Part shown: piece after piece, positions 5,988-57,900 of the stretch
Layout of the letters: each line of letters begins with the position of its first letter
How positions within the stretch are numbered: the first letter of the stretch is position 1
NCBI GenBank assembly: GCA_964247055.1
Contig: OZ176050.1
Coordinates: forward strand, 15,004,001-15,068,000
DNA from: Paragordius varius
Taxonomy: Eukaryota; Animalia; Nematomorpha
Length of the DNA stretch: 64,000 nt
Reading direction: 5' to 3'
Notes under the pieces: generated by a model
What the model was told of the DNA's origin: nothing
Database searches by the model: none
What the model saw: only the letters and a program-made list of their open reading frames with translations
Position numbers and translations under genes: made by a program

Positions 5988-6021
<34 letters not shown>

Positions 6022-9338: not shown

Positions 9339-9370
<32 letters not shown>

Positions 9371-9952: not shown

Positions 9953-9983
<31 letters not shown>

Positions 9984-10205
9984 TGAAAAGTAATGTTATA
10001 ACTTTTTAGAATTTTTTTCTTTTTCAAGGGTGATAAATATTATAAATTATTCCTAGTTTAGTATATATACCCAACTGTAAAACTTAATAATCGTTAAATA
10101 TTAATGGAATCAAACATATATTTTAATATCTTTTTTTAGGGTTTATGAATTTAAGTTTGTGAAATTAAGGGTAAAATTTTAATAAGATAAAATTACAGTT
10201 AAACC

Positions 10206-10247
<42 letters not shown>

Positions 10248-16200: not shown

Positions 16201-19166
16201 AATTTTTTTTGGGTAGATCATTCAATAATTTTTACACGGATTCGAATGCGAGATTCATGGTTCCTCGCAGTGTTCCCATTCTGCCCGATAAAAAATTGCG
16301 GTCAAACACATTCATTTCAACGCAATACTATCCAATCAATTCCAAAATCTTTATTAGGGATGAAAAGGATCCACGTGCTTTGCCTAATCAAGTAAGTACA
16401 TTGTTTTAATTAATGATTTTGTTTTGATTTTTTTGTGAAAAAAAGGAATTTCGAGAAGCTAGGCTGTTTTTTTTGGAAATTTATATTGGTTTAAGACAAC
16501 ATAGTTTTTTTCGTTTTGTCCGTATATATACATTGATTACTATAGTTTAAGTATTTTGCACAAATTTTTTTATGTTTTGTCTCTTCTGTATAATTTTGAG
16601 TGTACCTCTATTATATTATTATTTAAAATAGCGTAAATTGCTCTAAAAATGTAATTTTTTACCGTATATTGTAGACAATGAATCAACGTTGTTTTTTTTC
16701 GAAAAAGATCAAGTATAAAAAACTGTTTTTATCTCTATTAACAATATTTCTTTTTGCCTGTTTTGTCTTTTGTCTAATTTCATAAATTTTTACTGTAAAA
16801 TTTATGTTTTAAAATGTGTTTATTTTGCTTTAACTATAACTCATTAGACAACAAATCAACGTTTCTTTGGCATAATAACGGACAGAGCCCAAGGGGCGTC
16901 TGCATTAGATGAGGGAAGTCTTGAAATTATGATTCATCGAAGAACGATAGCGGATGATTGGTTGGGTGTTGGTGAACCCCTCAATGAACTCGGCTCAGAT
17001 AATGAGGGTAGGAATTAAAAATTGAAAAAAAAGTTTAATGTTAAAAATGTCAAAAATTTAGTTTTTTTTAAGTTTGAGGATGTTTTCCAAAATCAAAAAA
17101 CGTCATTTTTAAAATTTATATCACGCGTTAGAAAATATGCCTTTAGAGGTTTAATTTGCTTGAAATTGTCATAAAATTTACAGTTTTTTTCTAATTCAAA
17201 ATAAAATATATGAAATTTGGTCTATATTCCGTTATGCTTATTAATTATCACGCCTCTTTATAACATTATTAATTATTTTTCGTATTTTTTATATAAAATT
17301 TTGCATAATTGTAGTCCCAAATGAAAAAACACTCTGATTAGCAATGTTAAAATCAAAATTTATTACAATTTTAGCATTTTATTTTGTTACTGTGTTTTTG
17401 TTTTTATCATTTACTACAGGTTTAATTGCCCGGGGTCGATTCCTCATTCTGTGTAAAAGTGACAAGGAAGCCTTTTATGAAGGCTTGACTCGCCTTGCTC
17501 AACAAACATATCTTAAGCCTGAAATTATGTTTGCTGATGAGTCTAAACTCGCTTCCCCTCTTAGAATTTCCACCGAACCTATGCAATCAGTAATATTTTA
17601 ATAAAATTTTTGTCAAGTCGCGTTTTTTACAGTAAAAATTGAAATTATACGTGTACGTAAGACAAAACGCCGTATAAATATAAGGACAAATTATTTTTTG
17701 CTTTAAAAGACAACCCTATACTTTTTGGAAATCTTAATTTAAACTATTAAAAACATTTTATAACAATCGTGAAATATATAATTGATGTTTTACCGATATA
17801 CATATCGCAGTTTAAATCCATGAGTTATATTGAATAAAAAAAACAAGATTCAAAAAATATGGGGTTGTTTTTTAAAATAAATTTGTCTTTATATTTTACG
17901 TTTTGTATTCAGTATAATTTAAGTTTTTACTGTATATATATATATTAATAATTTCTTTAGTTTTAAAATGTAAGACTAAAAAATTTACCCAAATCTAACA
18001 ATTTTTACTAATTTTTGCCAATTAGGTTGACTTGATCAGAAAAATTATTTAAGAAATATCACCTTTTACTATTATAAGCTTTTTTAAACATATTTTTGCA
18101 AATTATGCATTTCTAGATTTTTCAAGTGTCGCGTTTTGGCCACCCCTATTCCTATATATGTTGGTTGTCTTTTGAAACAATATATTAATCTTTTAGTTTT
18201 TAAATTTTTAATTTATTTTAACTTTATATTTAGCAATTTCAATGGCAATTCATTAAGCAATCCTTACCAAGCAATGTTCATTTGCTGAGTCTTGCTCAAT
18301 GGAATCAATGGGTTCTTATTCGTTTCGAACACATTTACAGTCCTAAAGAACATTCTCAACTCTCAAACCCTGTAACGATTGATTTTAAGGTTAGCTTTTT
18401 AAATAAAATATTTCATTTTATGAATTAAAACAAAAGCTTTTTTTGTGGTATATATAGTTAGTTTTAAGAAAAATAATTTTATAAAATACGTATGTATATA
18501 TACTAATTAAAATGGTATGTTTTTCTTTATATATATTTGAGTTAAATTCTAATATCGGACATAATCTATATTGATTTTTAATAGATTAACATGAATTATT
18601 TGACATAATTTTATAGTGATTTTTTTATATTAACATATTTCGGCCCTGATTTTTTACTTGGATTGTATAAAAATAAATAACATATACCTATTACACAATG
18701 CTTGAAATATAAGGACAAAACGTGAAAATAAGACAATATTCCTTTTTTAAAACAACCATACTAATCTACACTTGAATTTTCTAAAATATTTATTTTCTGA
18801 AATTAATAAGAAATATTATCATCTCCCCTTCCGAATTCACAGTAAAAAATAAGATTATCCAAAATTTTAAATATATTACACTTTTTTAGTTTTGTCCTGA
18901 TTTATAACAATGATAATATTTTAACTGTAAAATTGTAGGATTTGTTCAAATCTTACACGATTGGAGCAGTGTATGAAAAAACTCTTGGGGCTAATCAAGA
19001 CCCCAACAAGGTAAAACGCTTCGTTTGGCCAACTCAACCATCTCAAAGCCCACAAGATATAATTCTTCTAGAAAATTCTCATCAAAATATCAATAATAGC
19101 ACTAAAATAACCCTTTTACCTTTGGATATAAAAACATTCCTGATAAAGTTGAATGCACGCAGTTAA
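620..19166 (+). CDS. MAN2B1: Lysosomal-type alpha-mannosidase (GH38, MAN2B1-like), 21 exons, about 1,140 aa, with N-terminal signal peptide
   Basis: Exons: 620-706, 737-839, 912-1082, 1163-1279, 4193-4372, 5436-5596, 6300-6488, 7194-7281, 7884-8080, 8749-8922, 9740-9871, 10528-10647, 11234-~11519 (donor ambiguous: 11516/11519/11540), 12729-12769, 14283-14519, 14964-15226, 16217-16391, 16848-17007, 17420-17589, 18234-18389, 18939-19166. All are GT-AG and phase-compatible. Motifs: signal peptide M(LTM)[37 protein letters not shown] (Zn ligands), [18 protein letters not shown] (nucleophile Asp), MGSDF (acid/base Asp), [44 protein letters not shown]. Confidence 0.95.
2520..3330 (-). mobile_element. 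Decayed non-LTR retrotransposon (RTE-like) reverse transcriptase C-terminal remnant, interrupted by a MITE-B copy
   Basis: Minus-strand fragments [39 protein letters not shown] and [16 protein letters not shown] match the RTE pattern EIKRRI / KIWKDRDI / VFxVATYGxESW / TNEEIR / GKVEGKRxRGRPxxRWLD; stops and frameshifts are present. Confidence 0.7.
2944..3221. mobile_element. MITE family B copy (TA-flanked; TIR CCATTTACAATTCAAATTCACCC with subterminal ~21-bp tandem repeats)
   Basis: Ends taccattt... / ...tgtaaatggta. Further copies at about 4815-5070, 5092-5385, 11920-12220, 13705-14263, 20337-20530, 25642-25975, 29235-29514, 29978-30279, 37140-37698 and 53691-53930. Confidence 0.8.
3609..3912. 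mobile_element. MITE family A copy
   Basis: cagtaaaactaaaattacaaaacgtgaaaatataaaggcaaat ... atttgtctttatatttttacattttgtcc...caatttttactg. Confidence 0.75.
6623..6900. mobile_element. MITE family A (Tc1/mariner-type, TA-flanked, ~280-300 bp, long TIR CAGTAAAAATTGAAATTATACGGACAAAACGTAAAAATATAAAGACAAAT...AAAGACAACCATACTTT)
   Basis: Inverted ends of about 90-100 bp starting TA|CAGT and ending ACTG|TA. Other two-ended copies at 10250-10506, 15843-16116, 17630-17932, 20104-20576, 21526-21860, 30619-30924, 35639-35927, 36614-36890, 55008-55285 and 61619-61868, plus many partial copies (e.g. about 345-422, 7330-7648, 8340-8640, 24180-24290, 33444-33730, 51010-51263, 58040-58310). Confidence 0.85.
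13188..13362. mobile_element. MITE family C (TA-flanked, ~180-200 bp, TIR CAGTATGCATTTTAATGGTTGCTTATTT)
   Basis: Inverted ends tatgcattttaatggttgcttattt / aaataagcaaccattaaaaagcttactg; two more copies at 23453-23634 and 32292-32498. Confidence 0.8.
13705..14263. mobile_element. MITE family B copy with a strongly expanded right subterminal tandem array
   Basis: More than ten imperfect GGGTGAATTTGAATTGTTCAA units between about 13935 and 14260; ends about 20 nt before the mannosidase acceptor at 14281-14282. Confidence 0.8.
15427..15837. mobile_element. hAT (Charlie-like) MITE, 411 bp
   Basis: TIR CAGGGATTCTTAAACT / AGTTTAAGAAGCCCTG (1 mismatch); 8-bp flanks ttatacag / ttttacag (1 mismatch); subterminal GGGTCGCG motifs. 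Confidence 0.85.
17630..17932. mobile_element. MITE family A copy
   Basis: TA|CAGTAAAAATTGAAATTATACG ... GTATAATTTAAGTTTTTACTG|TA. Confidence 0.85.
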
Positions 19167-19801: not shown

Positions 19802-22576
19802 TTATAATTTGACATGTTTAAGTATGGTTTGTAATTTATCCCTACTAACGTAAGCACAATATATGGATGAAAGACCCAATCCAACCAAACTTCCCATAAA
19901 AATCTTCCTAGGACCAGCTATATAATATAATATACAGTAAAAAAATATAAAGACTTTAAGGTTTTTAATGTTTACATTTTGTGCAAATTATAGTTATTAG
20001 TTAAAAATCCTACGTTGACATCAATTTTTTCGTTTTCATGAAAATTAATTGGAATTTTAACAATTATAAGGAAAAAAACTAACTAAAATCTAATTTATAT
20101 ATATAGTAAAACTTGAAATTATACGGACAAATATGTAGAAATATAAAGACAAATATTTTTTTTATTCCAAAGGACAGCCCCATACTTTTTTTCAAAACTT
20201 GATTTTTCCCATATAATATTTATTTAATTACAACTGTAAAATATATAATTGATTGTGTTACCAATACTCATTTATGTTTCACATGCAATTAAAAGGAATC
20301 AAGTTTATAAAAGTAGAGCAGTCGTTTAAAATATATATTCCATTTACAATTCAAATTCACCCTAAAAATAATATTAATATAAAAAGTATCTTTATGGCAT
20401 AGTTTCTAATTCTTGAGTACTTTAATTTAAAACAAAATTTTATTTTTTTTAAATATATGAATATATATAATTTTCAATCTTAAAATATGTATAATTTATT
20501 TGAGGGTGAATTTGAATTGTAAATGGTATATTTGTCTTTATATTTTTATGTGTCCGTATAATATCATTTTTTACTGACCAATTTACATCTCTGTTCCCTT
20601 ATATATATATAATATATGTCTTTAAAAATATTTGTCTTTTAACATTTAAAAATTGTTTATTTTTATTATTAATCTTTATAAAAAAAAACTTTTTTCCTAC
20701 CCAATTAAAAATATGTTCATTGTGATAAATAAATTTTTAACTAAGGCACACATATTTTTACATAATAAAATTTTAAGTTAAATTTAAAATTTTTAACCTG
20801 TGCATTTATAAAGAGCTCCAGTTAGGGTAGCTGAAGCCAGGGTATTTAACTCATCGTCAGAACCGCGGACCCAAGAAAATAAAACGCCAAAACTGCTATA
20901 CATCAAGGCTAATATTACGTATAAAAAACTTTAAGATTTTTATACAAGATTTTTTTTAATTTAATGAAAATATCTGTTGATATAGCAACTTTTTACTCAT
21001 AAAAAGTGGTATATTTAACGATTTAATAATATTTTAAAAATTTAGATTCTAATACTTAAATAGCTAAAATCCATATATATATATATATATATATATATCA
21101 TAAAAAACTTTTTACACCAAACAAATATAAATAAAACTGAGAAAAATTTTAAATTACCGACAACCCCTAAAACATTAGCAGTTCCAGCACCTTGACGCGT
21201 CACATAATTCAACAGTCTATTGTAATAAAAAATTAAAAATATAGTAAAAATTGATTGAAATTATACGGACAAACATAAAAATAGGATAATATTTCTTTCT
21301 TTATGATAAAGACACACTCATACTTTACAAAAAAAACTAATGAGTAATTACAAAATAGCGAATTATTTAACAATTTACACATCAACCCTATCACTTATTT
21401 TATTTTTATGAATGTTAAAATATTTTAAAAACCAAATTTATTTAATTTAATTTTATTTACTTATCATTTTGGATTGCGATATGTATAAAAGAAACGCACG
21501 CAATTCGGAAAAACACACTCAACTACGGTGAAAATTGAAATTATATACGGACAAAACGTAAAAATATATAAAAAATATTTTTTTGTAAAAGACAACTAAA
21601 TCTTTATATATTTAAATATAACTCAGTTAAAATAGCTACGTATATTGATAACACAATAAATCATGTATTTCACAATGTAATTAAATAATATTTTAATGAG
21701 AATTTTGGTTTAAAAATAAATGGGGTTGGTTGTCTTTAAAAAAAAAATATTTGCCTTTATATATTTACAACGTATAATTCTAAATATTATAGAATTATCC
21801 AGATGAGAAAATAATTTCTTTTAATTTTATATTTTGTCCGTATAATTTCATTTTTTACTGTTAGTTTATTATAAATTTTGAAATATTATACTGTGTTCTT
21901 TGAATACTGCCTTTCATCCCAGTCAATTGAGTTTGTCGCAAACCTGTATAAAGTCCATTTATTCCACCCAAAGCACTGCCTAAAAAACATATTTTTTTAT
22001 AAATTTTTTTAAAAAAGAGATTTTTTTTATATCAGAGGTTTAAATAACATTTTGAAAAAACAAGATCACAAAACTAATAAGAAAACATTAATTTTTTGAC
22101 AGTTTTAAAACTAGTTCAGTTTCTAATTTACATTACTTTGTATGAATTAGATAAAAGGTGATGTTAATCAATTTTTACGTCTCCAAAAAAAATCATCTTA
22201 ATATTTTAATATTTACAGAAATACAGCAAAATAGATTGTTAAAAGTTAAGAAGATTAATTTCAATCTTTTAAAAAACATTTATAACACCTTAAATTAAAA
22301 TTTAAGATAAATAGCAAGAGTAAAAATAACTTATTATTGTACTAACAAACCAATTTGTAAACCTAATATAACGGAAGAACCGATTTGTGAAAATGCCAAT
22401 TCAAATCGTCCGCGTTGTTTATTCGCCCCTTCTGGCATAATAAATTCAGGTTCATGCTAAATTTTATAATTTTTTCATACTTTATATAGCAAAGCTGGAT
22501 CAAAATTGAGGTATGGTGACATCATTGTATACCCAGGCCTACTGTTTTTCGGATATTCCTCACTCATGTCGGGCAT
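19802..22576 (-). CDS. TIMM23: Mitochondrial inner membrane translocase subunit Tim23, 6 exons, 184-187 aa
   Basis: Exons (minus): 22576 or 22567-22481, 22456-22363, 21979-21892, 21216-21158, 20908-20798, 19917-19802. Translation includes SPYLNFDPALLYK|HEPEFIMPEGANKQRGRFELAFSQIG, ALGGINGLYTGLRQT, LLNYVTRQGAGTANVLG, RGSDDELNTLASATLTGALYKCT, colinear with Tim23 as I recall it. The ORF track misses it because every exon is short. Confidence 0.96.
20104..20576. mobile_element. MITE family A copy with a family B element nested in its right TIR (about 20337-20530)
   Basis: A left arm and core, then B (ccatttacaattcaaattcacccta...gggtgaatttgaattgtaaatggta), then the remaining A right arm tttgtctttatatttttatgtgtccgtataat...ttactg. 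Confidence 0.75.
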
Positions 22577-38967: not shown

Positions 38968-41900
38968 TCAAAATAGCTTAAATGTTTCATTAGTGACTTT
39001 GTCAGGTGTTATTTCAGGGACATGGTTGGCCATATACGGAACGGATATACGGGCCCCACCTATAACCACTATTTGACAATCATCACAAGAATCCAATGAA
39101 TAAAATATGGTCTCAGGAATGGGCGCCATATTATCCATATGCTCGACACGGTTAAAATAAATGCCAAAGTGTGCCAAACCGTTTGTAATATCCGATACGC
39201 GCCATTCAAGCACAGGTAATTCATGTGTGGAAAGGAAACGGGTAATATCAAAATTTGGTTCATTAATAACTTTAGATAAGGGTTGACTTTCATTTGAAGA
39301 AACTCTTATACGTTCGTCAAAATCATTGATTGCCCTTACTAAGGGTTTTAAATCCAAATAGAATGGATATAAAGAATTTTTACGTTTCTTATTTGCGAGT
39401 GTTAGGTGGTAAGGTGTATTATGTGTTTCAATCTTTACTTGTTCATCATATGACATTTGGCTTTCGGTAGTACCTTTAGGCCCTTTGTCAGTGCTGTGAT
39501 TTATGATGTTAGCTGGCTGGTTTTCAGAACCTCTCGTGTCGCAATCACAATAAGCACACATTTTAAATGCCTCCAACACGGATGATAAATGAGATGGTTC
39601 TTGGATCGCACTACAGTTTGCTATATCGTTACCAGTTAGAGGCAGATCAACATAGGGACCAATGTCGTTATCTAAAACATTCATATCATCGTTTGCATCA
39701 AATCCGATAAAATTATGGCTAATATTTGAATGTGCAGGTGACGCATGATGTGAATTATATTCTCTGGACAAAAGATGTTGTTTCATTCGTTCGATCCTGG
39801 TTAATCGGTTTCGGTTAATTCGCTCCTGATCTTGAGGAGAAAGTTTACAGAGTCTACCATGACGAGGCATTGCCTCGGAAGAAACCACAGTAGATGAAAT
39901 GGAAGGAGTGGTAACCTTACAAAAATGTTTGTTCGAAGTTGAAGGCCTTTCCAAATCTAAAAAGTGTGGTGATTTATTTAGACCGTTATTTTCGTTTGAC
40001 TTATCTGGCACCAAAACTGGCAATTGATGTGCAGGGGTCACGTTTGTTTCTTCATCCGTTGACAAATTTATTTCCATGTTATCTGAAATTGGCAGATTTT
40101 GGACCGGATCAAAATTAATACTGGGATGAAATAAATCCGAAAATGGCCTCCGAGAATAGGAATCATGATCACTTTCAGAACTGGTGTGCATAGGATGCTG
40201 GTAGGCTTGTAACATACCTTGTAACTGCCTATGTTCCCGCACACTATTTAAATGGGCATTAAATTGTTGAGTCCTAAGATTTAATAGATCAATAATTGAT
40301 CCCCTATTGCTAGTATTTCGATTGTTACTAAGGAGCTGTGAATTTTTATACGGGGCAAGTACAACAAGCATTTGTTGTGTGTGAAGATACGTGGCGGATC
40401 TAGCCCATAAATTAGATGGCCACGCTTCACTCCAACAAGTGCTTGAAGTCTTGCCACCGGAAAACGTATCATTCTCATCCTCAATAAACTCGCTCTTAAT
40501 GTCCTCATTATGGGTTGTATTGCTGTTACTTGTGCTTGTGTTATTGTTAGCTTGAAATTGTGAAGCATTCTGAGCCGCTGCATTCATACACGACCTATTG
40601 AGACGGCATGAACGGGCCAATGATGTAAAAATATTTTTCGTTTTTATTTCAACCCAATACCATGGTAATCGTATATTTGGCCCAGATGAAGGTTGTTGAG
40701 ATGAAGCAGGATTTCCATTCAATGGTTCCCGGAAAAAGAAGCCACCCGTTCTAAGAATCCAAGCGTCATGATATTTATAACCAGATGTAGAAATACCCCC
40801 TATAATAAGCCAATCACCACTTTCCCGCAAAGGAGCATGGGAATGATTAAATCGAGACGTTGGCCCCGTCTCTGTGAAGGGAATCGTCATAAGCCTTTGA
40901 TGATGTTCTGTGTTGCCATCCAATGATCGACTGCCATCTTCATGTGATGATATTGGGGATACATTGGGCGAAGAAAATAAATTAACTGCCCGAGTATGAG
41001 AGTTAGCTAGTCTAACATTATGATCTATAGGTGCTGGTGACCATGACATTTGTTGGAAATCAAACACCCACAAGGCGTTGGAAGAGTAAGGACCGGGTGA
41101 ACATAGGCCCCCAAATACTAACATGAAAAGACCCTTTTTACATTTCACGGGTTGAGCCGCTAAATTAGATGATACATTTGTAGTAGCATCTAATGGGCTT
41201 GATAAGGGAAAGTAAGCGTTTTTATCACGCAAAGAATCCCAAGAAGAATCAATCAACGACTCTTTCAGATGATTTGCATGAGAGTTTTCGTTATAGTTAA
41301 GCTCAAAGATAGCTGCGGTATGACCTGCTGTAGCGGGAGGATGTAAAAATGAGGCCCTTAAATCGGAATAATCTATATCATCGGGTGTAACTCCGCTAAT
41401 GTCTGTATTAGCTACCAATCTGGTATTATACATATTCCGGTATGATTTGTATTCCGTGTTATCGGAAAGCATTTGAGAATTTTTTTGGAAGTTAGCTAAC
41501 GGATCTATCTTGGACCATTTATTTGTGACAATATCAAACATATGCAATGTATTAAGCATACGTGGCAATTCAAACAGCGAAGATGCCAAAGCGTGACCCC
41601 CAAACAAGACAAGTTTATCCATGTTATAGGGTAGGGCAACTAAGGTAGCGGATGATCTAGGGCAAGGGATATCGTTACTATTCCTTGAATACTTGTGATC
41701 ATTGGAAAGCGATACGTTAGAATTATAAATAATTTTGGTCCATTCCATAGTCAATACATTAAGTTTCCATAAATCATTTAACTTGGAGGATGGTTCGGGT
41801 TGACCACCGAAAACGTATATGTGACCTTTGTGATAACAAGTGGCATGTTTATACCTGGGAGTAAAAATATTGGTGGATTTAGATACAACGGGATGGTTAG

Positions 41901-42252
41901 GTAGTTCATTTACAATGTAATGCGAATGAGATAAAAATGTAGGATCATATAATAGGTTCACTCCAACTGGTACACTTAATGTCCGATAATAATGACAAAA
42001 ACATTTGCAAAACTTTTGAAAATCTTTGTTATGCAATTTATGGGGATAATATTTTTTAATTAAACAGCTCCCATGATAAAATGAATTTTCAAAATCTTTC
42101 TGCTTAATTTGGAGTGCATTATAAGAAATGGCTTTCCATCTCGCACAAATGGTTGATGCAATATATTTAAGTGTAAATGAATCAACTTTAGATAAAATGT
42201 ATAACAAAATTTCATCGGGAATATCACAAAATCCCAACTCCGTGCAAGACAT
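38968..42252 (-). CDS. FBXO42: F-box/Kelch-repeat protein (FBXO42-like), single exon, 1094 aa
   Basis: Uninterrupted ORF. N-terminal F-box (IPDEILLYILSKV...ICARWK), Kelch repeats (PRYKHATC..HIYVFGG..LNDLWKL, PCPRSSATL..LVLFGGH, MLVFGG, RFNHSH..LIIGG) and a C-terminal LEWRV...PETIFYSL..IVVIGG block, arranged as I recall FBXO42. Confidence 0.85.
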   Translation of the reverse strand: MSCTELGFCDIPDEILLYILSKVDSFTLKYIASTICARWKAISYNALQIKQKDFENSFYHGSCLIKKYYPHKLHNKDFQKFCKCFCHYYRTLSVPVGVNLLYDPTFLSHSHYIVNELPNHPVVSKSTNIFTPRYKHATCYHKGHIYVFGGQPEPSSKLNDLWKLNVLTMEWTKIIYNSNVSLSNDHKYSRNSNDIPCPRSSATLVALPYNMDKLVLFGGHALASSLFELPRMLNTLHMFDIVTNKWSKIDPLANFQKNSQMLSDNTEYKSYRNMYNTRLVANTDISGVTPDDIDYSDLRASFLHPPATAGHTAAIFELNYNENSHANHLKESLIDSSWDSLRDKNAYFPLSSPLDATTNVSSNLAAQPVKCKKGLFMLVFGGLCSPGPYSSNALWVFDFQQMSWSPAPIDHNVRLANSHTRAVNLFSSPNVSPISSHEDGSRSLDGNTEHHQRLMTIPFTETGPTSRFNHSHAPLRESGDWLIIGGISTSGYKYHDAWILRTGGFFFREPLNGNPASSQQPSSGPNIRLPWYWVEIKTKNIFTSLARSCRLNRSCMNAAAQNASQFQANNNTSTSNSNTTHNEDIKSEFIEDENDTFSGGKTSSTCWSEAWPSNLWARSATYLHTQQMLVVLAPYKNSQLLSNNRNTSNRGSIIDLLNLRTQQFNAHLNSVREHRQLQGMLQAYQHPMHTSSESDHDSYSRRPFSDLFHPSINFDPVQNLPISDNMEINLSTDEETNVTPAHQLPVLVPDKSNENNGLNKSPHFLDLERPSTSNKHFCKVTTPSISSTVVSSEAMPRHGRLCKLSPQDQERINRNRLTRIERMKQHLLSREYNSHHASPAHSNISHNFIGFDANDDMNVLDNDIGPYVDLPLTGNDIANCSAIQEPSHLSSVLEAFKMCAYCDCDTRGSENQPANIINHSTDKGPKGTTESQMSYDEQVKIETHNTPYHLTLANKKRKNSLYPFYLDLKPLVRAINDFDERIRVSSNESQPLSKVINEPNFDITRFLSTHELPVLEWRVSDITNGLAHFGIYFNRVEHMDNMAPIPETIFYSLDSCDDCQIVVIGGARISVPYMANHVPEITPDKVTNETFKLF

Positions 42253-43451
42253 CTGTCAAAACGATGGCTAGATGAAGTTATAAAGATCAACTGATATATT
42301 TAGTCTGCCGAAATCGGAAGGTATAAAAAAACAATAAAATATATATACATATATATATTGATACTTTTGGTTTTACTCCTTAAGAGTGATATAAAAAGTT
42401 ATACTTTTGCTGCATGTAGATCAGATAAATGGTAATATTGCGCACTTTTTTTAAATTTTTGGCGAAAAAATATCACTAAAATATAATATAAACCACATTT
42501 AAAAACTTAAATATTTTTATAATTTTATTTTTAGATGTGAGCTTCGAAAGTCCCAAATTTTCTTCTAAAATGCCATATTACTCTTAAAATAAATGCAAAA
42601 CTGCCGAAATTGGGGATTAAAAATCTATAATATATTTTATTAAGTTGTTATTATACCACGAAGTCGGACGTATTATTATTAATTTTTATTATCATTTGTA
42701 AAAATAACTGATATGCATGATAAAAGCCATAATTTATAGGAAACATTTAAATTTCTTGCATAATAAATTATCTTCAATCGTAGTTCGAAAAAATAATACA
42801 CACAATTCTTTATTTGCTATAATTGCACAGTGTCCACGAAATACCCGATAATACTTGTATATTCCAAAAAATATAGGATGATCATGGGGCATATTACTCA
42901 CATTATATCATAAAATAACAAACTTTGCGCGCATTTTTATAAATAAAAAATAGAATTAAATTACATAATTTAATGAAAAACAAAGCAATATTTTTTAAAA
43001 TTAGAAGTTTTTCCATCTTTTAAAGTGTATTATTATCTTAAAATAAACGCAAAAATTTCGCGATCGCGTAAAATTTTAAATTAATGGTAAATTATCAATT
43101 AAAGAAATATTTTAATGTATATCATTAAAAAATTTAAGAAAAATTTTGTAAAAGCATCATACTATTTTGAGTCCTGATGGAAACGGCTTAAAACTGCTTT
43201 ATATGATTTCACCTTTTTTAAAATAACTCATTTCTATCACCTCGAAATTTTAAGTAAATCGTCAAATTCTTATATAGAAAATTTTTTTATAAAAAAAATA
43301 GCAAACAAGTCTTTTATTTCAAATTTTAAGGTAGTAAAAATTCAGCATCTTTGAAATTTATAGTTAAAATAATTTTATAATCTTAAAATGTTTTTAAATC
43401 TCCATCATCAGTTAAAATAGTATGTAGGCTTTAAGACAAAATTTTATTTAA

Positions 43452-44715: not shown

Positions 44716-46921
44716 TTAATAATAAAATTTAAATTATTATTTAAGTTATAATAAAATTATATTATTTTGTGGCGCAATCCCGTTCTTGCTTAGAGAACTA
44801 GCCTATTTAAGACGAGCGAAAAAAAATTGGGACTTTTGGAGCTCACATATTATAATCTTTTAATATCTTATTTTGCTTTGTATATGCACTATATGATATA
44901 TTTCAGTAATATTTTTAGGAAAGAATGTGCGCAAATTTTCCCATTGTCTGATATGGAGCACCTACCACAAACGTGGAAAATTTTTGATCGTTCAAAACCA
45001 AAAGCACCATGGTAATCCTGATATATTCTGGTATCAAAGTTATATATGTTAGGTATTTCTTGGACATTGTGTAATAGAAACGCAAACACTTTTAGATATA
45101 ATGAAAACACTTTTTCTACGTAATTCAATGATGTTGAACATATCTCTCACCTCAGAATTTTATTTAATGGATTGTTTACTCTCAAATATGGGTCAACTTT
45201 GGTAAAAAACATATATTATCTTACATTAATTTGAAATCAACATTTATTTGAAACAAATTTTAGAGGTGATAAAAATAATCGAATTATGTGGAAAAAGTGT
45301 TTATTAATATCTTATACCATTTTATATCGATAATGATTGAAATAGTATGAAGCACGATTCAACAAAATGTTGTTATAAATTTTAAAAACATTTTAATATC
45401 AGCGCATATATCAAATTTATATCTCGCAATCTCGGTATTTTTGCGTTTATTTCTATAAAATATTAGCCCATTTTAGAAGGGCGAAATATTAGGGTCTTTC
45501 GGTGCCCACATTTGAAATTAAAATTTAAATTAATATAGTTGCTTTTTATATAAAGTTTTTATATTTTAGCTATTTTTAAAACGAGGCATTTAGCTTCCAT
45601 AAAAAAAATAATTGACAAAATATGGGGATATTTTCTCATTTGTTGCAAAAGTGATAAAAACTTTATTATGTTAGTAGTAAGGGTATATATTAAATGCATC
45701 ATATCCTGATACATTGAGAACAAAAGCATTTCATGAGAATCGCCCCTAGAATTTGGATGCGGTATAAAATATTTTTGAAATTTGGCATCAGCTTTACATT
45801 TTATAGCATAATGTACGAGCGATATTCACTTTTGTTTTATCAGGATATATAATCATTTTTTTATATCAATCTTGCCCTTAACCAAAGCACAACGAGCGTT
45901 TTGAAAATACCATTTATCGGAGTATACTTTATCAAGAGATTTTTGTACACTATGTAAATCTTATTTTAGGATGGGGTAGTTTTATATAAGACCTCCATTT
46001 TTACTTGTTTGGCTTGTGACTTTTCAGGGTATTTATATCTTCAAAGCCATTTAAAATTATTTAAAAAACATTCTTACTCTATGGGATAAATTTATTACCC
46101 TTTGCGATGATAAATTTTTTTCTAAAAAAAGTTAAATTTGTAAAAATGTTTCTTTTTTAGCGGCTATTTTTTTGATATTTGTAATTTGCTATTACAACAG
46201 GCAAATAATATTTAAAAATATTAATTACCTTAAAAAACATTTTTTATCTAATATTATCGGCCAATTTTCGAGATATTATGTTTTAAAGCTACAAACTCCG
46301 GCCTATAGAATTAAAAAAAAATCAAATTAGTTTTTTATGTTTCCTAATTAAATTCAGTAAAAACAATTATAACAATAGTTATGCTACTTTAGGCTCTAGG
46401 CGCATACAAAAAGTGTAATTAAGTGTTAATACTTCACAGTTTTTAAAGGTTTTTTTTATATCCGAGCGCGATAACAATTTTTCTTTAATAATAATCAATT
46501 ATTCATCCATATTTAAAACATGCTTTTTGGCTTTTAACCTTATTATATGAAATCTTTTTTTTAAATGCTAAAAAATTTTTCGCCGCCTTTTTTTTTATTT
46601 TTATATCGCTAATGCCACAGACAAATAAAATATTATGAAAAGTAAATAAGTAACTTTAGAAAACTCTCAAGCTACTTTTTGCCATCAAAGTTTAAATACA
46701 GTTGTTTGTTTGATCAGCATTCCTGATTCAAGGCAAAATTGTAAAAAGTATAATATTTAATAAAAAAATGATACATAAACTTTAAAACAGTAGTTTTTTA
46801 CAAAATTGAGATCTAAACAACACCGATATGTCATCGTGGGCGAAAATGTGAAAAGATCATTACAATATGTTTAAAGACTGTTTTAAAATATCTTCATGAC
46901 ACCATATGTCATACATGCCTT

Positions 46922-49900
46922 ATGCTCAGATATTTAATTTACGGTTTAGTTTTGAAATTGTCCATTTTGGCAGCACGCGAAAACTATGATTTATGCGTTA
47001 ATAAAAAAATAAAGATTAAAGTTTAAAATTTTTATATTGAAGAATGCTGTTTGTACTTTATGTAATGTAACACAAATTAATCGGTCTTTAATCAACCCGA
47101 ATTTTGAAATTAATATCAAGACATATCGCTGGATGACCCAAATTGATGAACAAAATTACCAAAATTATATCGGAATTAATATAAGCTGGACAATAAATAA
47201 TTTGGTTACGAAGTAAATTATTATATAGAAATTAGGGATGTTCAATTTGCGGTATATAATGTTTTAAATGATCCAAAAATGAACCTATTTTCACCAAAAA
47301 CAATACAATGTAATGATTTAATTAAGTTAGAGGTATGATACGCATTTAATAAAATTAGAATCTATATTATGATTGCCTTTTTATGTTTCCTAATACACAA
47401 CCTCTTATACTCTATATTGAATCTTACATATCTTATCATTACTTTAGTCAGAAATATGTATCTCTGCCCAGTATAAATGACATCTTAAGTTTAATTTTTA
47501 ATATTAATTGGTTTTTATAGCTTTTCATAGTTGGAAACCAACCCTAACCTATACTTTTTCCCATTCAACAAACCCTAATCAAAATTTATCAGTTGATTTA
47601 GACATTTCTCTTATTGTGGGACATGTACAAACGCCCCCTAAATTTTTACATACTAAATTTTTTGGTTCAATCCAAATTGTATTATGGGTACTACTAAATG
47701 CATCAACGTTTGAAACTCTATCCTATGGTCAATTACTTTTTAGTTTGCATGATACATCTAAAGCCTCTCAACTTTGGCCTGTATCTGTTAAACTAATCAA
47801 AGCGGTAAGTTTTCTTTTAGCTTTTTTATCTATAATTTGTCTTTAAATTATCCTACATTGTTGCCTAATTTAGACGGAACCAGATAGTCTTGAGAAATTT
47901 GTATTCACCTTTCAAGATCTATTTAACCCTTACATCGTGGACCAGTTAATTCACAATAAGCTCAATTCTTTATCACCAGTGTATGCCAATGACTCGTTTG
48001 GTAAATTATCGGAAAATTTTTCAAACGCATTTTCTACACGACCTAGCCCACAAAGTATTTTAGCTTTAAGGTCGTTGTATTTAAACAGCTCTACCATTTT
48101 TTTCATGACGGCCCATAAAATGCCACAGTCTCAAAATGAGCTTAATCAAAAGTCGAAGGAAACCAAAAAATGTTTAAACAATTATTGGAATGCGGCGGGA
48201 GATTGGACACCTTGGTTCACGTGCACATTTAATTTGTCGGATAATGGTACCATAACTTCTGTGGTCGGTAGTATACCTGCAATTATGTCGCTAGGCTTTC
48301 ATTTCGCTTATATGGCAAAATATTATCCTTTTACTATGGGCCAAAACAACCAAGCCTTTTTAACACACTATTTTTCCCTCTTTAATATGCAACAAAAAAG
48401 ATTTGAAGGAAAGGCTGTCTTATTTCTTATTGTTTTATCCGTACTTTTTACGCTGGTTTTAGCGAGTTGCGTTGTGTTTGGGTATTACCGTAAAATCTAC
48501 TCCAAAAAGATATGGAACGGATGTTCTGATACAAATGTAAGTTCTGAAAATGTAAATCGACATAATTATGAAACACCTCTACTAGAATCAAAAGCTAAAC
48601 CGCCGAATGTTTTAGTTTTATATCCACCATTTCTTAAAGAATCTTTAACTATGGGCGTGGAATTGATTGAAACGTTTTGTGACATTTTCCAAACGCATTT
48701 TGACTGCAAAGTACATTTGGATTTGTGGAACTTATTAGAGGTAGTAGACCCTTTTTAAAATTTTTAAAACGTTGATTAAATATCTTAAATTAGGAATATA
48801 TCATTAAGTCAAAAGGAACATTTTTTCAAGCAAACGCGACATTTTTATTCAAACGCAGCATTTTTTCGATTTTCTGGATTAAAAAATTGTTGTCTCTTTT
48901 AAAAAATTTGCGTTTGCATGAAAAAATTTTGTGTTTTCTTGAAAAAAATGTAAAGCTATTATGATATTTTTTTTAAAAAAGTTTTATTTTATAACTTAGA
49001 ATAAGTCTTCGCATCCACTTTTTTGGTTACAAGAATCTATATCCAATTCACAAGTTGTGATTTACCTTATCCCAGCATGTAAAATTGGGGACATTGAAAA
49101 AAAGGCCAAAATTAGACAGGAACTTTTTATTTTCAAGGATTATATGATGCGTTTGGCGTCTCAGGGAAAACTACCAACTATCATAAAACATAAATTATGG
49201 TCAAATTTGTTTAATGCCTCCCTTCGTCTCATAATATCGCAACAATTAACATCACAAGAAAATGAATACCGCAGTAAAGGCGACCACCTACAAATCATAT
49301 TTATCATCCTAGGTTTCCAAAATATTATTGCCGATGAAATGCCAAACGAATCTTGTTGTGTAGAAAGTAATTACATAATAAATTATTTCAAACTACTTAA
49401 AGGGCTCTGCCCAAGCTCCAAATTAATTTTGGTTGGTGAACCACAAAAACAAGCGAATTCCAGCTATATGAATCCCATTTTTTATCATTTATCAAGCGTT
49501 TTGCCAGTAAAGATAAAGGGCGAAAACATAGTTGACGAGACTAAGGATAAGCATAAAAGCTTTACAACACTCTTAACTAGGTTTAATTGGCTCTTTAACA
49601 ATATAAATATGGACACACAAGATAGACCAATAGAGGAATCCATCTTTCCAACAAACAATATAACAGGAACTGAAAATCTAGAGCTTATAAATTTAACAGA
49701 TATAGACCGTAAAATTGACAATTCCTTCCTGTATGATTTCAATTCAAGCCTGCTAACACTAAATGATGTACCCTTGTTTGAAACAATGTTGGGCAACGTG
49801 CCAGATAATACAGAAAAAACGACAGATATATCAGTTCAAAAGGGCAGTTTTAGGGCAATTGATAATAGTCAATACTTGGATATTGGTGAACACCTAAACT

Positions 49901-49956
49901 CATACATGCGATTATTTAATGTGCCGACATTCGAAAAACTCAAAAAGGGGAAATAG
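46922..49956 (+). CDS. IL-17 receptor family-like type I membrane protein with SEFIR domain, 7 exons, about 860-867 aa
   Basis: Exons: 46922-47020 (or -46996), 47043-47212, 47236-47332, 47359-47488, 47521-47804, 47874-48740, 49000-49956. Signal peptide MLRYLIYGLVLKLSILAA; Cys- and N-glycosylation-rich ectodomain (NVT, NRS, NIS, YDC, FHSWKP); transmembrane segment AVLFLIVLSVLFTLVLASCVVFGYY followed by RK; SEFIR-like boxes PNVLVLYPP...FQTHFDCKVHLDLW...FWLQESISNSQVVIYL. Confidence 0.75.
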
Positions 49957-50099
49957 TTTTATTGAGATTTATGCGATCCATATTATACTGTGAAATTTTT
50001 TTAGCTATCTTTGGTTTCATATGGATGATGGATAGAATATATCAATTCTAAAAAAACTCTATGGTAACTAACTGACTATTCAACGATGTACTTAACATA

Positions 50100-51595
50100 A
50101 TGGGGAATATCTTTACACAAGTAAATTTTTTCGTTTTTTAAGCCAATATTATTATAATTAACTCATCATTGTCTATATCATATCATAACATATTTGCAGG
50201 AAAATGTGGAAGAAAAATTCGAAATTATACTACGCAATCATAGGGTGGCCTTCGAATCCAAATGGAATTCGCATGAAAAAGGTGCGTATAGCAAATGCGA
50301 TGATTTCATTTACATTAGGCGTTTGGGGGAGGGCGGATTTGGTAAAGTCCTCCTGGGAAAGTGTAAAAGAACCAAAAAGTTTTTTGCCATAAAACTCATG
50401 TTAAAACGCGACTTGGTAGATAAACGACAAGTCAAACAAGCCTTCAATGAACGCAAAATTTTGTTTTGCAATGATTTCCGTTTCCTCATGTCACTCCACA
50501 GTTTTGCCAAAGATTATTCCACCCTTTATCTCGTGATGGAGTTTATGGATGGTGGGGAACTCTATGCCTACCTCAAACGCATGAAACGTTTTAGCGAACC
50601 GCTAGGCCGCTTTTATGCGGCACAAGTCATTCTTGGCATCAAATATCTCCATACGATGGATCTCACTTACCGTGATATGAAACCCGAAAATTTGCTGTTG
50701 GACATTCGCGGTTACCTCAAGATTGGTGATTTTGGCTTTGCTAAGAAGGTTAAAAACAAAACTTGGACTTTTTGTGGAACACCTGATTACATGGCACCCG
50801 AAGTTATCTTGAGTCTCGGTATGAATCAAGCTGTCGATTGGTGGGGCATTGGTATCCTGATATTTGAAATGTGCGCCGGCTTTGCACCCTTTGCCGACCC
50901 CCAAGAGGACAATGTATATGCCAAAATATTGGCTGGCCAATACAAAATTCCTTACCATTTTAGTCAACAAGTAGTTGGTAGTTTTTTTGTTTTACACAAT
51001 AGAAATTGGAATTATACGGATAAAACGTAAAAATATAAAGGCAAATATTTTTTTCTCGAAAGACTAACCATACTTTTTTAAGCTTATTTTTTTCTTAAAT
51101 GAACTATTCAATCCTTTTAAAATATATAATTGATTGTTACATACTTTATTTCAAACAATGAATTTCAATTAATCAATCAATTAGGATTAAAAAAGTATGG
51201 TTATCTTTTAGAAAAAAATATTTGTCTTTTAACGTTTTGTCCGTATAATTCCAATTTTTACTGTAATTTTCATGTCGTCAAAAACCATTTTCCAAATGAT
51301 TATTTTTCATATTTAAACGTGTGCGCAGGTAGAAGATTTAATTGAACAATTTCTAAGGGCAAACCCTTCGACTCGATTGGGTATGGGTGCGAATGATACA
51401 CAAAAAATAAGAAGTCATCCCTGGTTTACTAATTTGGATTGGACGCTTATATATGAGAAAAAAATTATATCGGATTTGGTCCCCGATTGTCCGACACGAT
51501 TGCAGTTGGAAAGTAAAAAACAGGCTGACATTCAAAAACATTTGGGCCCTGTGGCGAGCTCTGAGGAATTTCCTGATCTTTTTGCGGATTTTTGA
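50100..51595 (+). CDS. Divergent cAMP-dependent protein kinase catalytic subunit-like AGC kinase, 3 exons
   Basis: Exons: 50100-50120 (MGNIFTQ), 50200-50970, 51329-51595. Motifs GEGGFGKV, FAIK, YRDMKPENLL, DFGFAK, TWTFCGTPDYMAPE, AVDWWGIGILIFEM, HPWF and a terminal FxxF hydrophobic motif (FADF-stop) typical of PKA-C. Confidence 0.9.
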
Positions 51596-51951
51596 AGGAA
51601 GAAATGATAGATTGTTATTATCACAAAGGAAAATTGAGACGAAAAAAATGGATAGGCTCCCTTGATCATCAAATTGTTAATTATACGTGTTTTTAATGAC
51701 CGAATACCCTGAGAGCGTCATTTATAAAATGGCATATCCCTAACACTACTTTTATTCATTTATACAATAAATTATAGGTTGATTTATTGTTTGATTGTCT
51801 CTCTTAACTTACACAATGTATAATACAGTTGGATATTTTTTAAATGTAGTATGTATGTATATAATTGACTACGATCATATAATACAAATTATCCTTTACA
51901 ATAATAATAATAATCTTTATATAACAACATTAAAACACCTTTTGTGTCAAC

Positions 51952-54900
51952 CTACGATGGAAGTTCAAAGATATGAGGGCATTGACCATAATTCCGTTCC
52001 CAATAGGCATCGTTGAATTGCCAATCAATGTTATCGGAGTCGCGTTTAAAGTTGGGGTTCGGTCCTGAGGCGAACCACAGCGGACCCTTAACTATGTCAC
52101 AAGAACGGAGTTTATCCAAGCTCTGTAACTTGGTGCTGTGATCATTTGGATCAATGCGTAGAGCATTTAACTGTGAGGCTGACATTGATTTTACGGCTTT
52201 TGCTACGGTCCGCTGTTTTTCTTCGAGCGCATTCTTTAGCTTGGAGCTGAGATCAACTTTGCCATTTTCGTATTCCCGCATATCGGGTCGGAACCGAGAA
52301 TCGGTGCAAGGAAACTTTGAGGCATCGGGCGGTAACTCATTGAGTATCATACTGAAGAGTGAGAAGTTAAACATCTATATACAATAAAAATAAATATCGT
52401 TATGGAAATGCAATAATTAAAAAATTATGATAGAAGAGGGAACGAAACAAAAATATGTACAAGATAATTGGGGGTAAGGGATAATAAATGGAATATATTA
52501 AAATAAAAACAAACCATTGATGTTCTTTTTACATTATGATTTTTGAATTTTTCTAATTAGAAACCCAAGGCATGTTGATTTTTTTATTAAGTTTATTTAT
52601 GAATTTAAACTCTTGAACCTGTTTTGAATTGGCAGGTTTTGGCCTATAGTGCCAAAGTAGTTTTGATTGAGGTAGATCTAATACAAATTTTGCGTATTTT
52701 AAATGCTCGATCGTGGGTGGAGGAGATGTATCGTTTACTGGCATAGCACCTTCGGCGTATAACGTCTTTATGTTTAGTCAGAAAAAATATTTTTCACATA
52801 AAATGCAAACAAAAGGCATTTTTTTAAAAAGATAGCCATGCATGAATTCTATTGTTTTAAAATAACTTGTCGTTTTTTGTAATTTAAGGGATACATATGT
52901 AAATTGTTTACATTCATTCAGATAAAAATCAAAGTTATATAGTTTATGTGGGATATAACAAGGTTTTACAAAAGTATAGTTGTCTTTTTTAAAAAAATTT
53001 CCCTCTTTTAGTCATAATATTTCGTCTTTATAATTTCATTATATATCATTATAAAAATAAATGAAAAATAATACTTGGTAGGAATAAGCCTTTTTTGACA
53101 GCTAAAATATATTGATAAAAAGTATAGTTATAGATAAGTATAATGAGATTAAGGTAATATTTAATAGGGCTTACACTGCTACTCCGTCTCCGTAACATTT
53201 TATCCGTAACACTTTTACTGAGTGAATTTTCATAATTTTTGGGGGTAGTTGAGTACAGGGCTAGATTCCAATGCCCGTATAAGGCTCTAACTTTTGTATT
53301 CCTATATATACATTTAGATTTGTTAATCCATCTTATGAAATATTATATTCTCATTTAAAACTTTTAAGAATTTTGGGATCAATTAGTAAGTTCGATTCCG
53401 TATTGGTTGGTCGTCTCAAAATAAACAGTTAGAATCAAAATTTTTAAATGGAAAAATTAAAAGTTAATTGTTTTGATTCAGGTTTTGAAAAAGAGTTTTT
53501 GATACCTTTGATCTAAAATGAATCCATCGACGCGATTAACTTCTTTGCCAAACATACCCGCTGGTCGAAAATTGATAGAACAAGAATATCCATTAGTGTG
53601 GTTTTTGATATCTAGTGTACCAGTCTGTGGTATTGTTAAATTTAAAACAACTTTTGACTACAACATATTTCTATCTGGATTCATTAAATATACCATTTAC
53701 AATTCAAATTCACCCTTGAACAATTCAAATTACCCCTAAAAATAAATTATGTTTTCGGGCTAATATAACTCATCATTAATATGAAATATATTTTTACGAC
53801 ATAGTTTATTATTTTTTCAGCATTGTATTAATTTTAAACAATATTATATATTTTCAAAATATTAAAAATTAAAGCAACATATTAGGGTGAATTTGAATTG
53901 TTCAAGGGTGAATTTGAGGTGTAAATGATATAACAGTTGAAAAATGCTCCTTTGATTTTTAGGATAATCCAAACAAGTTTTATGTTATATTTTAAAAAGG
54001 TGGTGGCTTGAAAAAATAAGTTAATATAAAAACCAATGGTATATTTAATTTTATCCTATGAAAAATCTTTATTCAATGTCTGGATATACCAATGATGTTT
54101 AAAATAAATTGGAAATTTAAATTTTTGAAAAAAAAATTAGTTTAAAATTGATCAAAGCTTATAATTTTACATGTTCTATCCACAGTTTTCCCATTATAAT
54201 GTTGTGTATCGTGCAGTTTGGGTTAGTCCATGTATAACATTCATTGTGACTATGCATAAAATATGACAATAAAAATATTTCATTAAAGATCCTGAACGGG
54301 AGATTTTTTGAAAATTATATACAGTAAAATTAATATTATGCAGAAAAAACGAAATAACTTAAGGAAAGAATATCATTTTTGAAAATTAAACCAAGCTATT
54401 TAAAACCATAAACTTTTAATTACAATTTTAAAATTATGAAATGTAATGTACTTTTTTCCTATTTTATCATGATCGTATTTGAAAAATATTTGTCTTATAA
54501 TTTTTAAATTTTGTCCTTTATAAACAAAATTATGTAAAGAAATTCTAAGATAGTCACAGAAAAAACTTGAATACTTTTAATTTTAATATAAAAAATTCCA
54601 ACACTATTTTCCTTTTTATAAAACAATTTTTACTGCAAAATTTTATGAAAATTCAAAAAAATTACTTTTTAAGGTAGAGACTGATAACACCAATGGGTGT
54701 TACATCTAAAGCTTTCCCCCAAAACTTGCTTTTGGGATGGATGGAACCATGAAATTTGTACAGTTTTGATTCGGCATGGAAGGCACTGATGGGTGGGTGA
54801 TGAGACACCTGTTCACAAACCATACTGTAACCAGCTTCGGGCCTAAAAAAATTTTTTTGTTGCATATTTACAGTAAAAATTGAAATTATGCAGACAGAAC

Positions 54901-57900
54901 GTAAAACTCAAAATTAATAGACATATATTTGTCTAAAAGATAACCAACCAGACTGTATAAACCCTGATATTTCCTACATACATACATACATACATATACA
55001 TTATATACGGTAAAAATTGAAATTATACCGTCAAAAAGTGAAATATAAGGGAGAAATATTTTTATCCAAACAACAACCATACTTTTCAAACCTTAATGTT
55101 TCCCATATTAGCTACTTAGTTACAATTTTAAAATATAGAATTGATTGTGTTAGTATTATATATTTCTATTTCACACTGCTATTTAAAACAATGAGTTATA
55201 TCAAAAAAAAAGTATGGTTGTCTTTTTGAAAAAAATATTTGTTTTTATATTTTCACGTTTTGTCCGTATAATTTCATTTTTACTGTTTAAATTAAATTTA
55301 CTTAACACTTCGATTCAAATTGGGGTATCTAAATACCCCAGATTAAATTTAAATTAAAATTTTTAAAAAACTACTGAAGGAAACGGTCCCAATTTAAATT
55401 TATGCTTTTATCCTAATAAATATTAAATAAATGTGCCAAAATATCTTGGTAAAATTTTGTTTTGAAAAAAAGTTCCACCTCAAACTACTTCGACGCCATT
55501 TTTATTTTACAAAAATTTTGCAAAATATCGTCCTCATTTAATTTTAAGGGTAAAACTGAAGCTTGTTTTTTATATAAATTACATCTAATATTGATAAAAA
55601 TAGAAAAAGCGGTTTATTTTGTATTATTTTTTTAATTTTGCAATATGACACATGTCACGTTGACTAAATTTTTACCTTTCAGTTTTAGCTCAAAATAAGT
55701 AATATCAAGTATTTTTGAATAAAATTTTTTATATATTTCGGTTTATTAATGTTGTATTAGTGCAAAATTTTGCCATGGTTTCGATTGCTTCCATACTTTT
55801 AAAACTATTTGATTTTAAACAGGCCTGGGGTATCCAACTACCCCAATTTGAATCGAAGGACTAAAATGAGTGTGTTGTATCCAAGTGTTAATAACACCAC
55901 TTTACATCTGTAATATTCGTTTCCTAAAACAAGGATTTATATTCAATAATCATGTCAAAAGTACAGCGGTCTTTAAAAAATATTTGCCTTTAAATTTTTA
56001 CGTTTTGTCCGTATATAATTTTACTCTAAAAACACATAGGGCAGTTTATAATTAAGAAATCGAAGTTATTTGAAATTTATTGCATGTAAAACACTTAACG
56101 AATAGAATACCATTATCACATTTTTGTTTTCCTATTTATATAAGGTTAGGATTATAAAAAAATATTTATATTAAGCCAAAAATTTCAGATTTGAAAATGA
56201 ATATATAAAAATATTTTCTATAATTATGTATCTGTGGATTACTTACATGTCTAATTCATATGTTTCACCCAGGAGCGGATTAAAAGGCTTGCCTAAGCGT
56301 TCCCAATTCGTCGCACAACCAGAAACGGCGAAAGCAGCTATAAACTTTAAAATATAAATTTAAACCATATAGCAAAAATAAAATTCCGATTTTATCTTAT
56401 TTTTTGAGACATCTGATGGTTTAAAATATAGAATAGCCCTAATAATTTTTTAAATTATCCAATTAAAATAAATTTTAAACGGGTTAAAAACCGTTATATA
56501 AAAAATATTTTGTCAGGTTCAGTTTTATTACATAACCGTACCCCTAGTTTTTTTATTTTAAAATGGTAAAATCTTTTAAATACTGCCCACACCTTTTGCA
56601 TTTTAAACCAGTAAAGGTAGATAGATAGTATTGGTAAAATTGATAATTCATAAATTTTCTTTTCTAAGTCACTCACAAAATTTTGGCAACGATCTAGCAA
56701 AAATTGTTATATTGCTTGAAATCTAATTTTTATGATTTTATGCTGGAAATCTAATAATCCATACATTTTTTTAAATAAGGCCCGTCAGCTTTTTCAATTA
56801 AAAACAGGGGCCTGAAAAGCCATATATATTAGGAACCCCTGATATAGACACTATTTCAGACTTCAAGTTTAAAAAACTTGGCAATAGAGGAATATTAGAT
56901 ATTTATAGAAATCATATATGAATTCATAAATATAAAATCTAAGAAAAGAGATAATATATATAACTTTTACAATAAATATTTATTGGTTTATTAGAATAAA
57001 AAAATTATATGTAAACACACATGAATATATATATATATATATATATAGCAAGAAAATATGATAAAATATTTTAAATATGATAAATAACGGTAAAAATCAA
57101 GGTCAGCCTCTAAATAATAATAATAATGTGGAAATAAAAAATGTATTGCATTTTTCCACATAATTTTGACTGTGTATTAATATATTTTTTTTAAAAACAT
57201 AGTTTAAAATTTAGGGGGTTATATTTAGCTCAAAATGATAAAATAAATCAAAATAGATGAATGATTCAAGCGTCTATTTTAATAATTGTATGTTAAAAAT
57301 TATCAATTTAAGTACTTTAGAAAAAGTATTTTAACATTAAAAGATTTATTAACCCAAGTTATTAATACAAAATCAATTATTCTACAATCAAAGTTAATTT
57401 GAAATACAGGCCCTAAATATTAAAAATATCCAAAACTTGGCTTTTATACGTCATATAAACTTATTTATGAATAAAAAATTGGGTAAACGAAAAACCTGCT
57501 AACTACCCAATAAAGAAATACTTTTTAATAAAGATTTTCCAAGATTTTCTTAAATAAAAGTATCATATAGAATATTTTATTTTTTAAATAAAAAATTGGA
57601 TATATAAGAAAAACCTCCATTCTTTCGACAGGATTATCAGTGGCATCGGCTTGTTCCAACAAAAATGCATATTCCATATATTCTGTTAACCGTTGTAGAA
57701 ATGAAAGTGGTTCATTAAACACAATAGGCATAGCGATTTTGGATAAATCCTAATTTTATTTAGCACACAATACAATAATTGAAAAAAATAGTTGTATAGA
57801 CTTTAATATTCTATATAGTTCTGATATAAATTTGAAATTTGAATATTTTTTAAAAGATTAAATCAGTTTTGATAAAAAAAACTTACTTTCCCAATGCATT

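Follow-up and report, generated by a model that had tools for sequence, protein, structure and literature searches.

A 2026 survey of 51 animal genomes reports introns shorter than 30 nt from two groups alone, myxobolid myxozoans and Dicyema (PMC13644364). Of the splice signals, little more than GTa and AG is left in these short introns, and a few A residues precede the AG (PMC13644364); Nematomorpha are not mentioned in the text of that survey. Introns are likewise not mentioned in the genome paper on the hairworm Gordionus or in a second hairworm genomics paper. Here, we analyse a stretch of 64,000 nucleotides of contig OZ176050.1 of the hairworm Paragordius varius (the window), in which an unannotated gene on the + strand (46922–49956, 867 codons) appears to carry four consecutive introns of about 22 to 32 nt near its 5′ end. 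The gene would encode a type I single-pass receptor, and the exons that these micro-introns separate would encode its signal peptide and much of its ectodomain.

The four candidate introns resemble those of the myxobolids Henneguya, Thelohanellus and Myxobolus and of Dicyema japonicum in their GT-AG ends, their length in the range of 20–32 nt and their very high AT content (PMC13644364). As in those animals, the splice signals are weak, with GTTTAA, GTAAAT and GTATGA at the 5′ ends and AAG and TAG at the 3′ ends. Runs of A lie a few bases before the AG, a polypyrimidine tract has no space, and the tiny introns are clustered side by side in a multi-intron gene, again as in myxobolids and Dicyema. 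The genomic setting is distinct. Myxobolids and Dicyema have compact genomes in which nearly all introns are tiny, whereas the gene described here also holds introns of 69 and 259 nt and lies in a transposon-rich genome with kilobase introns. The lineage is different as well, namely that of a protostome animal, since the kinase encoded next to the receptor gene has its closest matches among proteins of nematodes, arthropods and molluscs. Additionally, the 24–30% GC of the window and its many miniature inverted-repeat transposable elements (MITEs) fit the published Gordionus genome, which has 26.9% GC and 64% repeats, mostly DNA transposons.

We propose that four ultra-short GT-AG introns of the U2 type lie between the first five exons of the receptor gene and that the ordinary spliceosome would remove them, as it does the sub-30-nt introns of myxobolid myxozoans and Dicyema. 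On the evidence set out below, we consider it likely that the locus is a real, single-copy gene for a type I single-pass membrane protein with four micro-introns. Our confidence in the 23- and 26-nt introns alone is higher than that in the model as a whole.

Predicted splice junctions of the micro-introns

The open frame extends from the ATG at 46922 to the stop codon at 49954–49956 across seven exons, and upstream of 46922 no further in-frame ATG is present within the open frame. Exon 1 (46922–47020, 99 nt, or 75 nt with the donor at 46997) begins with the first in-frame ATG and encodes a hydrophobic, signal-peptide-like N-terminus (MLRYLIYGLVLKLSILAA). Micro-intron 1 (47021–47042, 22 nt, gtttaa..gaag, 14% GC, phase 0) has an alternative form of 46 nt at 46997–47042 and leads to exon 2 (47043–47212, 170 nt), which encodes three N-x-S/T sequons and two Cys. 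Micro-intron 2 (47213–47235, 23 nt, gtaaat..ttag, 13% GC, phase 2) separates exon 2 from exon 3 (47236–47332, 97 nt), and micro-intron 3 (47333–47358, 26 nt, gtatga..ttag, phase 0) separates exon 3 from exon 4 (47359–47488, 130 nt). Micro-intron 4 (47489–47520, 32 nt, gtttaa..atag, 12% GC, phase 1), whose alternatives span 47471–47520 (50 nt), 47447–47520 (74 nt) and 47511–47530 (20 nt), is followed by exon 5 (47521–47804, 284 nt). Further downstream, intron 5 (47805–47873, 69 nt, phase 0) has the classical ends gtaagt..tttag. The introns have a GC content of 12–23%, compared with 25–35% for the exons.

These micro-introns were proposed in a first-pass annotation made from the letters and their open reading frames alone. 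A script check of the sequence recovers the coordinates, lengths, GT-AG ends and phases (0/2/0/1) given there for all four, and the internal TAG at 47226–47228 and the alternative donor at 46997 are found at the claimed places. Retention of any one segment introduces a stop, specifically TAA at 47024, TAA at 47214, TGA at 47336 and TAG at 47518. Frame arithmetic likewise agrees with the earlier claim that the joined exons form one frame from the signal-peptide-like start into the downstream receptor exons, and a script check of the whole gene model returns a single frame of 867 codons. All four segments thus have canonical GT..AG ends, a length below about 35 nt and an open frame that is restored by their removal, which are the features by which an ultra-short intron is recognized here.

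How tightly the intron ends are fixed was examined by enumerating, for each junction, every in-frame GT-AG pair of 15–300 nt. The junction between exons 2 and 3 and that between exons 3 and 4 have exactly one solution each, of 23 and 26 nt, respectively. Because no other GT-AG pair serves at these two junctions, at least two introns shorter than 30 nt are obligatory if the exons are coding. The other two junctions are less constrained than had been claimed: junction 1 has four in-frame GT-AG options (22, 25, 46 and 55 nt), as does junction 4 (20, 32, 50 and 74 nt). Intron 1 would be 22 or 46 nt long; for intron 4, 32 nt is the simplest length, and 20, 50 or 74 nt are possible as well. Splicing of all four segments is predicted from the genomic sequence, as is the choice of donor at junctions 1 and 4.

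The first-pass annotation had also argued that four phase-matched GT-AG pairs are unlikely by chance in such AT-rich DNA. This is borne out for the chain and not for its single members. A four-link chain with exons of at least 90 nt occurs only once in the 64-kb window, namely at this locus, and no more than 2 links are reached on the other strand, in the reversed sequence or in any of 20 shuffles. Under a second-order Markov null, four links are found in 5 of 300 64-kb strand scans and three or more links in 32 of 300. A four-link chain is uncommon, yet it can arise by chance.

An alternative explanation is that the open-frame chain upstream of exon 5 or 6 arose in this way, with the true start located elsewhere, or with exons 6 and 7 alone forming the gene, and that 46922–47520 is non-coding. 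Several results weigh on this side and against a spliced 5′ end. Single GT..AG links (15–60 nt, bridging open frames of 30 or more codons) occur in the reversed control as often as they do in the window, so that a phase-matched GT-AG pair alone means little, and 1.7% of the 64-kb strand scans of Markov sequence contain a four-link chain. A codon-usage log-odds score trained on 590 local codons does not separate exons 1–5 from control open frames, and exons 1–5 have no family match. No run on record as RNA covers the locus, and one presumed same-species RNA run gave no contig; the runs that cover the locus are DNA only, and their contigs continue unspliced through the introns.

On the other hand, the chain lies directly upstream of the 289- and 318-codon exons, on the same strand and in frame with them, and these long exons would otherwise be without a start codon and a signal peptide. 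We estimate that this position lowers the chance probability there by about two further orders of magnitude. The chain moreover begins with a hydrophobic N-terminus, its introns are clearly more AT-rich than its exons, and the two deletions described in the next section fall inside the 22- and 26-nt introns. Taken together, we regard a chance origin of the chain as improbable and retain the spliced model.

Haplotype variation across the locus

Natural DNA variation provides a line of evidence that is independent of any relative of the protein. In the DNA contigs, the locus is present at single-copy depth and in two haplotypes. The second haplotype is about 8% diverged, with 28 substitutions in the 326 nt from exon 1 to exon 2, and the only gap in these 326 nt is a 1-nt deletion at 47026, inside intron 1. 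This deletion is tolerated only if intron 1 is untranslated. In that haplotype, it also eliminates two of the solutions at junction 1, those of 25 and 55 nt. Two runs have contigs with 2 nt deleted from intron 3 at 47338 and an A>G substitution at 47354, giving the intron a length of 24 nt in another haplotype. Three 1-nt deletions (47813, 47815 and 47819) in the second haplotype fall in intron 5, and one further 1-nt deletion (49957) removes the first base past the stop codon. The sole exonic indel among those listed is a 3-nt deletion at 49353 in exon 7, which keeps the frame.

Among the listed indels, therefore, those not divisible by three fall only in introns 1, 3 and 5 or past the stop. 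The introns make up 14% of the gene span, and the chance that three independent frame-breaking events would all be intronic is about 0.003. Among the listed variants, changes in segment length are not confined to multiples of three, and the exons stay in frame. The variant tables hold the best-supported variants, and a further 112 substitutions and 4 indels exist beyond them; this counts against the spliced model insofar as the indel argument rests on the variants that are listed.

The listed substitutions in exons 1–4, with codons read by hand, are compatible with coding sequence. The T>A substitution at 46999 in exon 1 is synonymous under the 22-nt model, as is C>T at 47117 in exon 2. In exon 4, two of the five variants (47361, 47362, 47434, 47476 and 47485) are synonymous and three are non-synonymous, with no stop. 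In total, 4 of 7 substitutions are synonymous and none of the 7 creates a stop. Natural DNA variation thus backs the micro-intron model, and this support is good, if not complete.

The same data bear on the explanation that the locus is a decaying pseudogene and that the four segments are frame-disrupting debris with a fortuitous GT start and AG end. In its favor, no expression is seen (the single presumed RNA run being without a contig) and no relatives are found. The listed polymorphic indels, in contrast, respect the exon frame, with 3 nt lost at 49353 and none of them located in exons 1–5. All four segments are GT-AG, contain a stop and restore the frame exactly, and exons 6 and 7 remain free of stops over 289 and 318 codons, at a GC content of about 30%. 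We therefore judge a pseudogene very improbable, and the functional, spliced gene remains the preferred model.

Across 46700–52300 of the window, the haplotypes also differ locally by about 8% (27–28 substitutions per about 330 nt). The published heterozygosity of Gordionus montsenyensis, 0.55%, is far below this local divergence, and the sample may be pooled.

Predicted receptor layout and candidate family

The predicted protein has the layout of a type I single-pass receptor, with a signal-peptide-like start, one helix with basic residues behind it, and sequons in the proposed outer part. Exon 6 (47874–48740, 289 codons) encodes the part of the ectodomain next to the membrane, the only membrane helix with a basic stop-transfer stretch, and the beginning of a SEFIR-like segment (VLVLYPP...KVHLDLW). 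The strong helix occupies residues ~183–205 of exon 6 (roughly 48420–48490), reaches 2.94 on the Kyte–Doolittle scale over 19 residues and is followed by YYRKIYSKK; the topology is derived from simple hydropathy rather than from a dedicated predictor. The ectodomain comprises about 420 residues, and 11 N-x-S/T sequons and seven Cys fall on the proposed outside. The cytoplasmic part comprises about 400 residues and includes the tail encoded by exon 7 (49000–49956, 318 codons plus stop), of which the first ~165 residues show, with low confidence, an alternating strand/helix pattern.

Exons 6 and 7 are separated by intron 6 (48741–48999, 259 nt, phase 0), which holds a high-copy palindromic element (48810–48950) whose arms at 48817–48847 and 48900–48930 are 84% complementary. 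DNA contigs are about 100 to 200 times deeper in the bin 48757–48943 than in the single-copy sequence on either side. Because this depth is two orders of magnitude above the flanks, a MITE-like high-copy insert has swollen an otherwise short intron 6.

In IL-17 receptors and the nematode receptors ILCR-1 and ILCR-2, as in the protein predicted here, a type I single-pass chain of about 870 residues combines a large ectodomain bearing sequons and scattered Cys with an alpha/beta-like segment on the cytoplasmic side, a short way past the membrane helix. The order of domains and the size of the predicted protein (867 residues, with the putative domain about 45 residues past the membrane helix) presumably fit IL-17RA/ILCR-1-type receptors. 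Judged by eye, the last part of exon 6 and the beginning of exon 7 also resemble the first strands and helices of SEFIR domains (VLVLYPP..., KVHLDLW, ...W..., VVIYLI). We propose that the gene makes a type I receptor with a signal peptide, the ~420-residue ectodomain, one membrane helix and the ~400-residue cytoplasmic part, the last of which would probably contain a very divergent SEFIR (IL-17-receptor-type) signaling domain.

The name IL-17-receptor-like given by the first-pass annotation draws a divided answer, with the type I topology and the language-model neighbors of exon 6 favorable to it and every sequence test silent. In a language-model feature search with exon 6, all 10 of the best named clusters carry SEFIR, mostly together with IL17R_fnIII or ILCR1 domains, and they include IL-17RB, IL-17RD and nematode ILCR-1-type proteins; the nearest clusters are thus of the SEFIR, IL17R and ILCR1 kind. 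The top cluster scores 0.87 and shares 183 of 256 features, a count that, in the calibration of the tool, is reached by 9 of 10 true family members versus 1–2 of 10 chance matches. The score of 0.87 lies below the 0.9 line of the tool and the query recognition value of 2115 below its 2300, and by the tool's own rules the result is a lead only.

The silence of the sequence tests counts against this family assignment and speaks for the alternative that the gene and its micro-introns are real while the protein is a lineage-specific orphan, that is, a single-pass receptor or adhesion protein outside the IL-17R/SEFIR family. Pfam searches of each exon and of pieces flanking the exon 6/7 junction, with E up to 10, return no SEFIR (PF08357) or IL17R domain, and those of each ectodomain exon return no FnIII-like module (PF16556, PF16578), Ig_ILCR1 or ILCR1_N; the rows returned are noise, for example Comm and DUF5321. 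The predicted protein differs in this respect from IL-17R and ILCR proteins, in that it has no profile or sequence match to SEFIR, IL17R_fnIII_D1/D2, Ig_ILCR1 or ILCR1_N. Searches of PDB sequences with exons 6 and 7 find nothing relevant and no IL-17R or Act1 chain, two word-index protein searches with the same exons give no match, and an exhaustive phmmer search of exon 6 against 1.84 billion representatives, with E up to 0.001, gives none either. These protein searches of exons 6 and 7 yield no orthologue or paralogue, so the intron positions have nothing to be compared with. Single-sequence AlphaFold models reach a pLDDT of 39 for exon 6 and 33 for exon 7 and are unusable. The language-model search with exon 7 gives weak, P-loop-like rows only (best 0.81).

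Part of this silence has a possible structural cause: intron 6 divides the putative SEFIR domain into pieces that are each too short for a profile match, and this would account for the misses. The agreement of the ten exon 6 clusters and their 183 shared features at the top also speaks against an orphan protein, as, presumably, does the fit of domain order and size to IL-17RA/ILCR-1-type receptors. On balance, an orphan receptor is a tentative alternative that we hold to be unlikely, and membership in the SEFIR/IL-17R family is the fairly probable assignment. The protein may be a candidate for a function in IL-17-like signaling. A SEFIR receptor in this lineage, if true, would be of modest comparative interest for IL-17-type signaling in Ecdysozoa.

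Particular to this gene are the four tiny introns in a row at its 5′ end, the lack of detectable relatives and the support by polymorphism instead of homology. As homology cannot support its introns, the gene would be a clean test case for such introns as a class. If the junctions are real, the minimum intron sizes usual in gene finders and RNA aligners would truncate the protein or miss the gene, and such a truncation would cost the signal peptide and about 260 ectodomain residues. A broader reading, to which we give about even chances, is that splicing of 22–26-nt introns extends to a third lineage of animals, represented by a hairworm-type ecdysozoan, and takes place there, unlike in myxozoans and dicyemids, in a large, transposon-rich genome with long introns in the same genes. 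Such 5′-clustered introns would hide the signal peptides and ectodomains of fast-evolving surface receptors from standard annotation, for example those of a divergent IL-17-type receptor, and the immune and neuromodulatory receptor repertoire of these parasites would be under-called.

Neighboring genes and repeats in the window

Adjacent to the receptor gene lies a gene for a kinase similar to the PKA catalytic subunit (50203–50975 and 51320–51592, + strand). Its product shares only about 50% identity with PKA catalytic subunits of animals, with best matches in nematodes, spiders/arachnids, crustaceans and molluscs, and looks like a divergent paralogue. Most of the one intron in this gene is taken up by a MITE (50996–51264) whose terminal inverted repeats measure 44 nt, at a contig depth more than 1000 times that of the flanks.

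Two further genes in the window, for a GH38 alpha-mannosidase (4042–19163, + strand) and an oxysterol-binding protein (53481–57749, − strand), consist of many small exons. Their introns measure hundreds to thousands of bases, unlike those at the 5′ end of the receptor gene, which are tiny. In the genes for the PKA-like kinase and the oxysterol-binding protein, all introns are longer, and neither gene offers a micro-intron positive control. Elsewhere, a 24-nt GT-AG candidate intron (gtatgaaaaaattataaaatttag) is found at 22457–22480 on the − strand; the 53- and 40-codon pieces that flank it, being too short, have no Pfam or PDB match alone and cannot be used as a positive control. Rfam and tRNA scans of the window find nothing.

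A single open frame of 1095 codons (38971–42255, − strand) encodes a protein with an F-box-like start and Kelch repeats, and occupies the one GC-richer stretch of the window (39% versus about 25%). Finally, the end motif of the MITE in the kinase gene, gtccgtataatttcaa..ttttactat, recurs in the window, for example at 8610–8665, 20079–20128 and 21217–21266.

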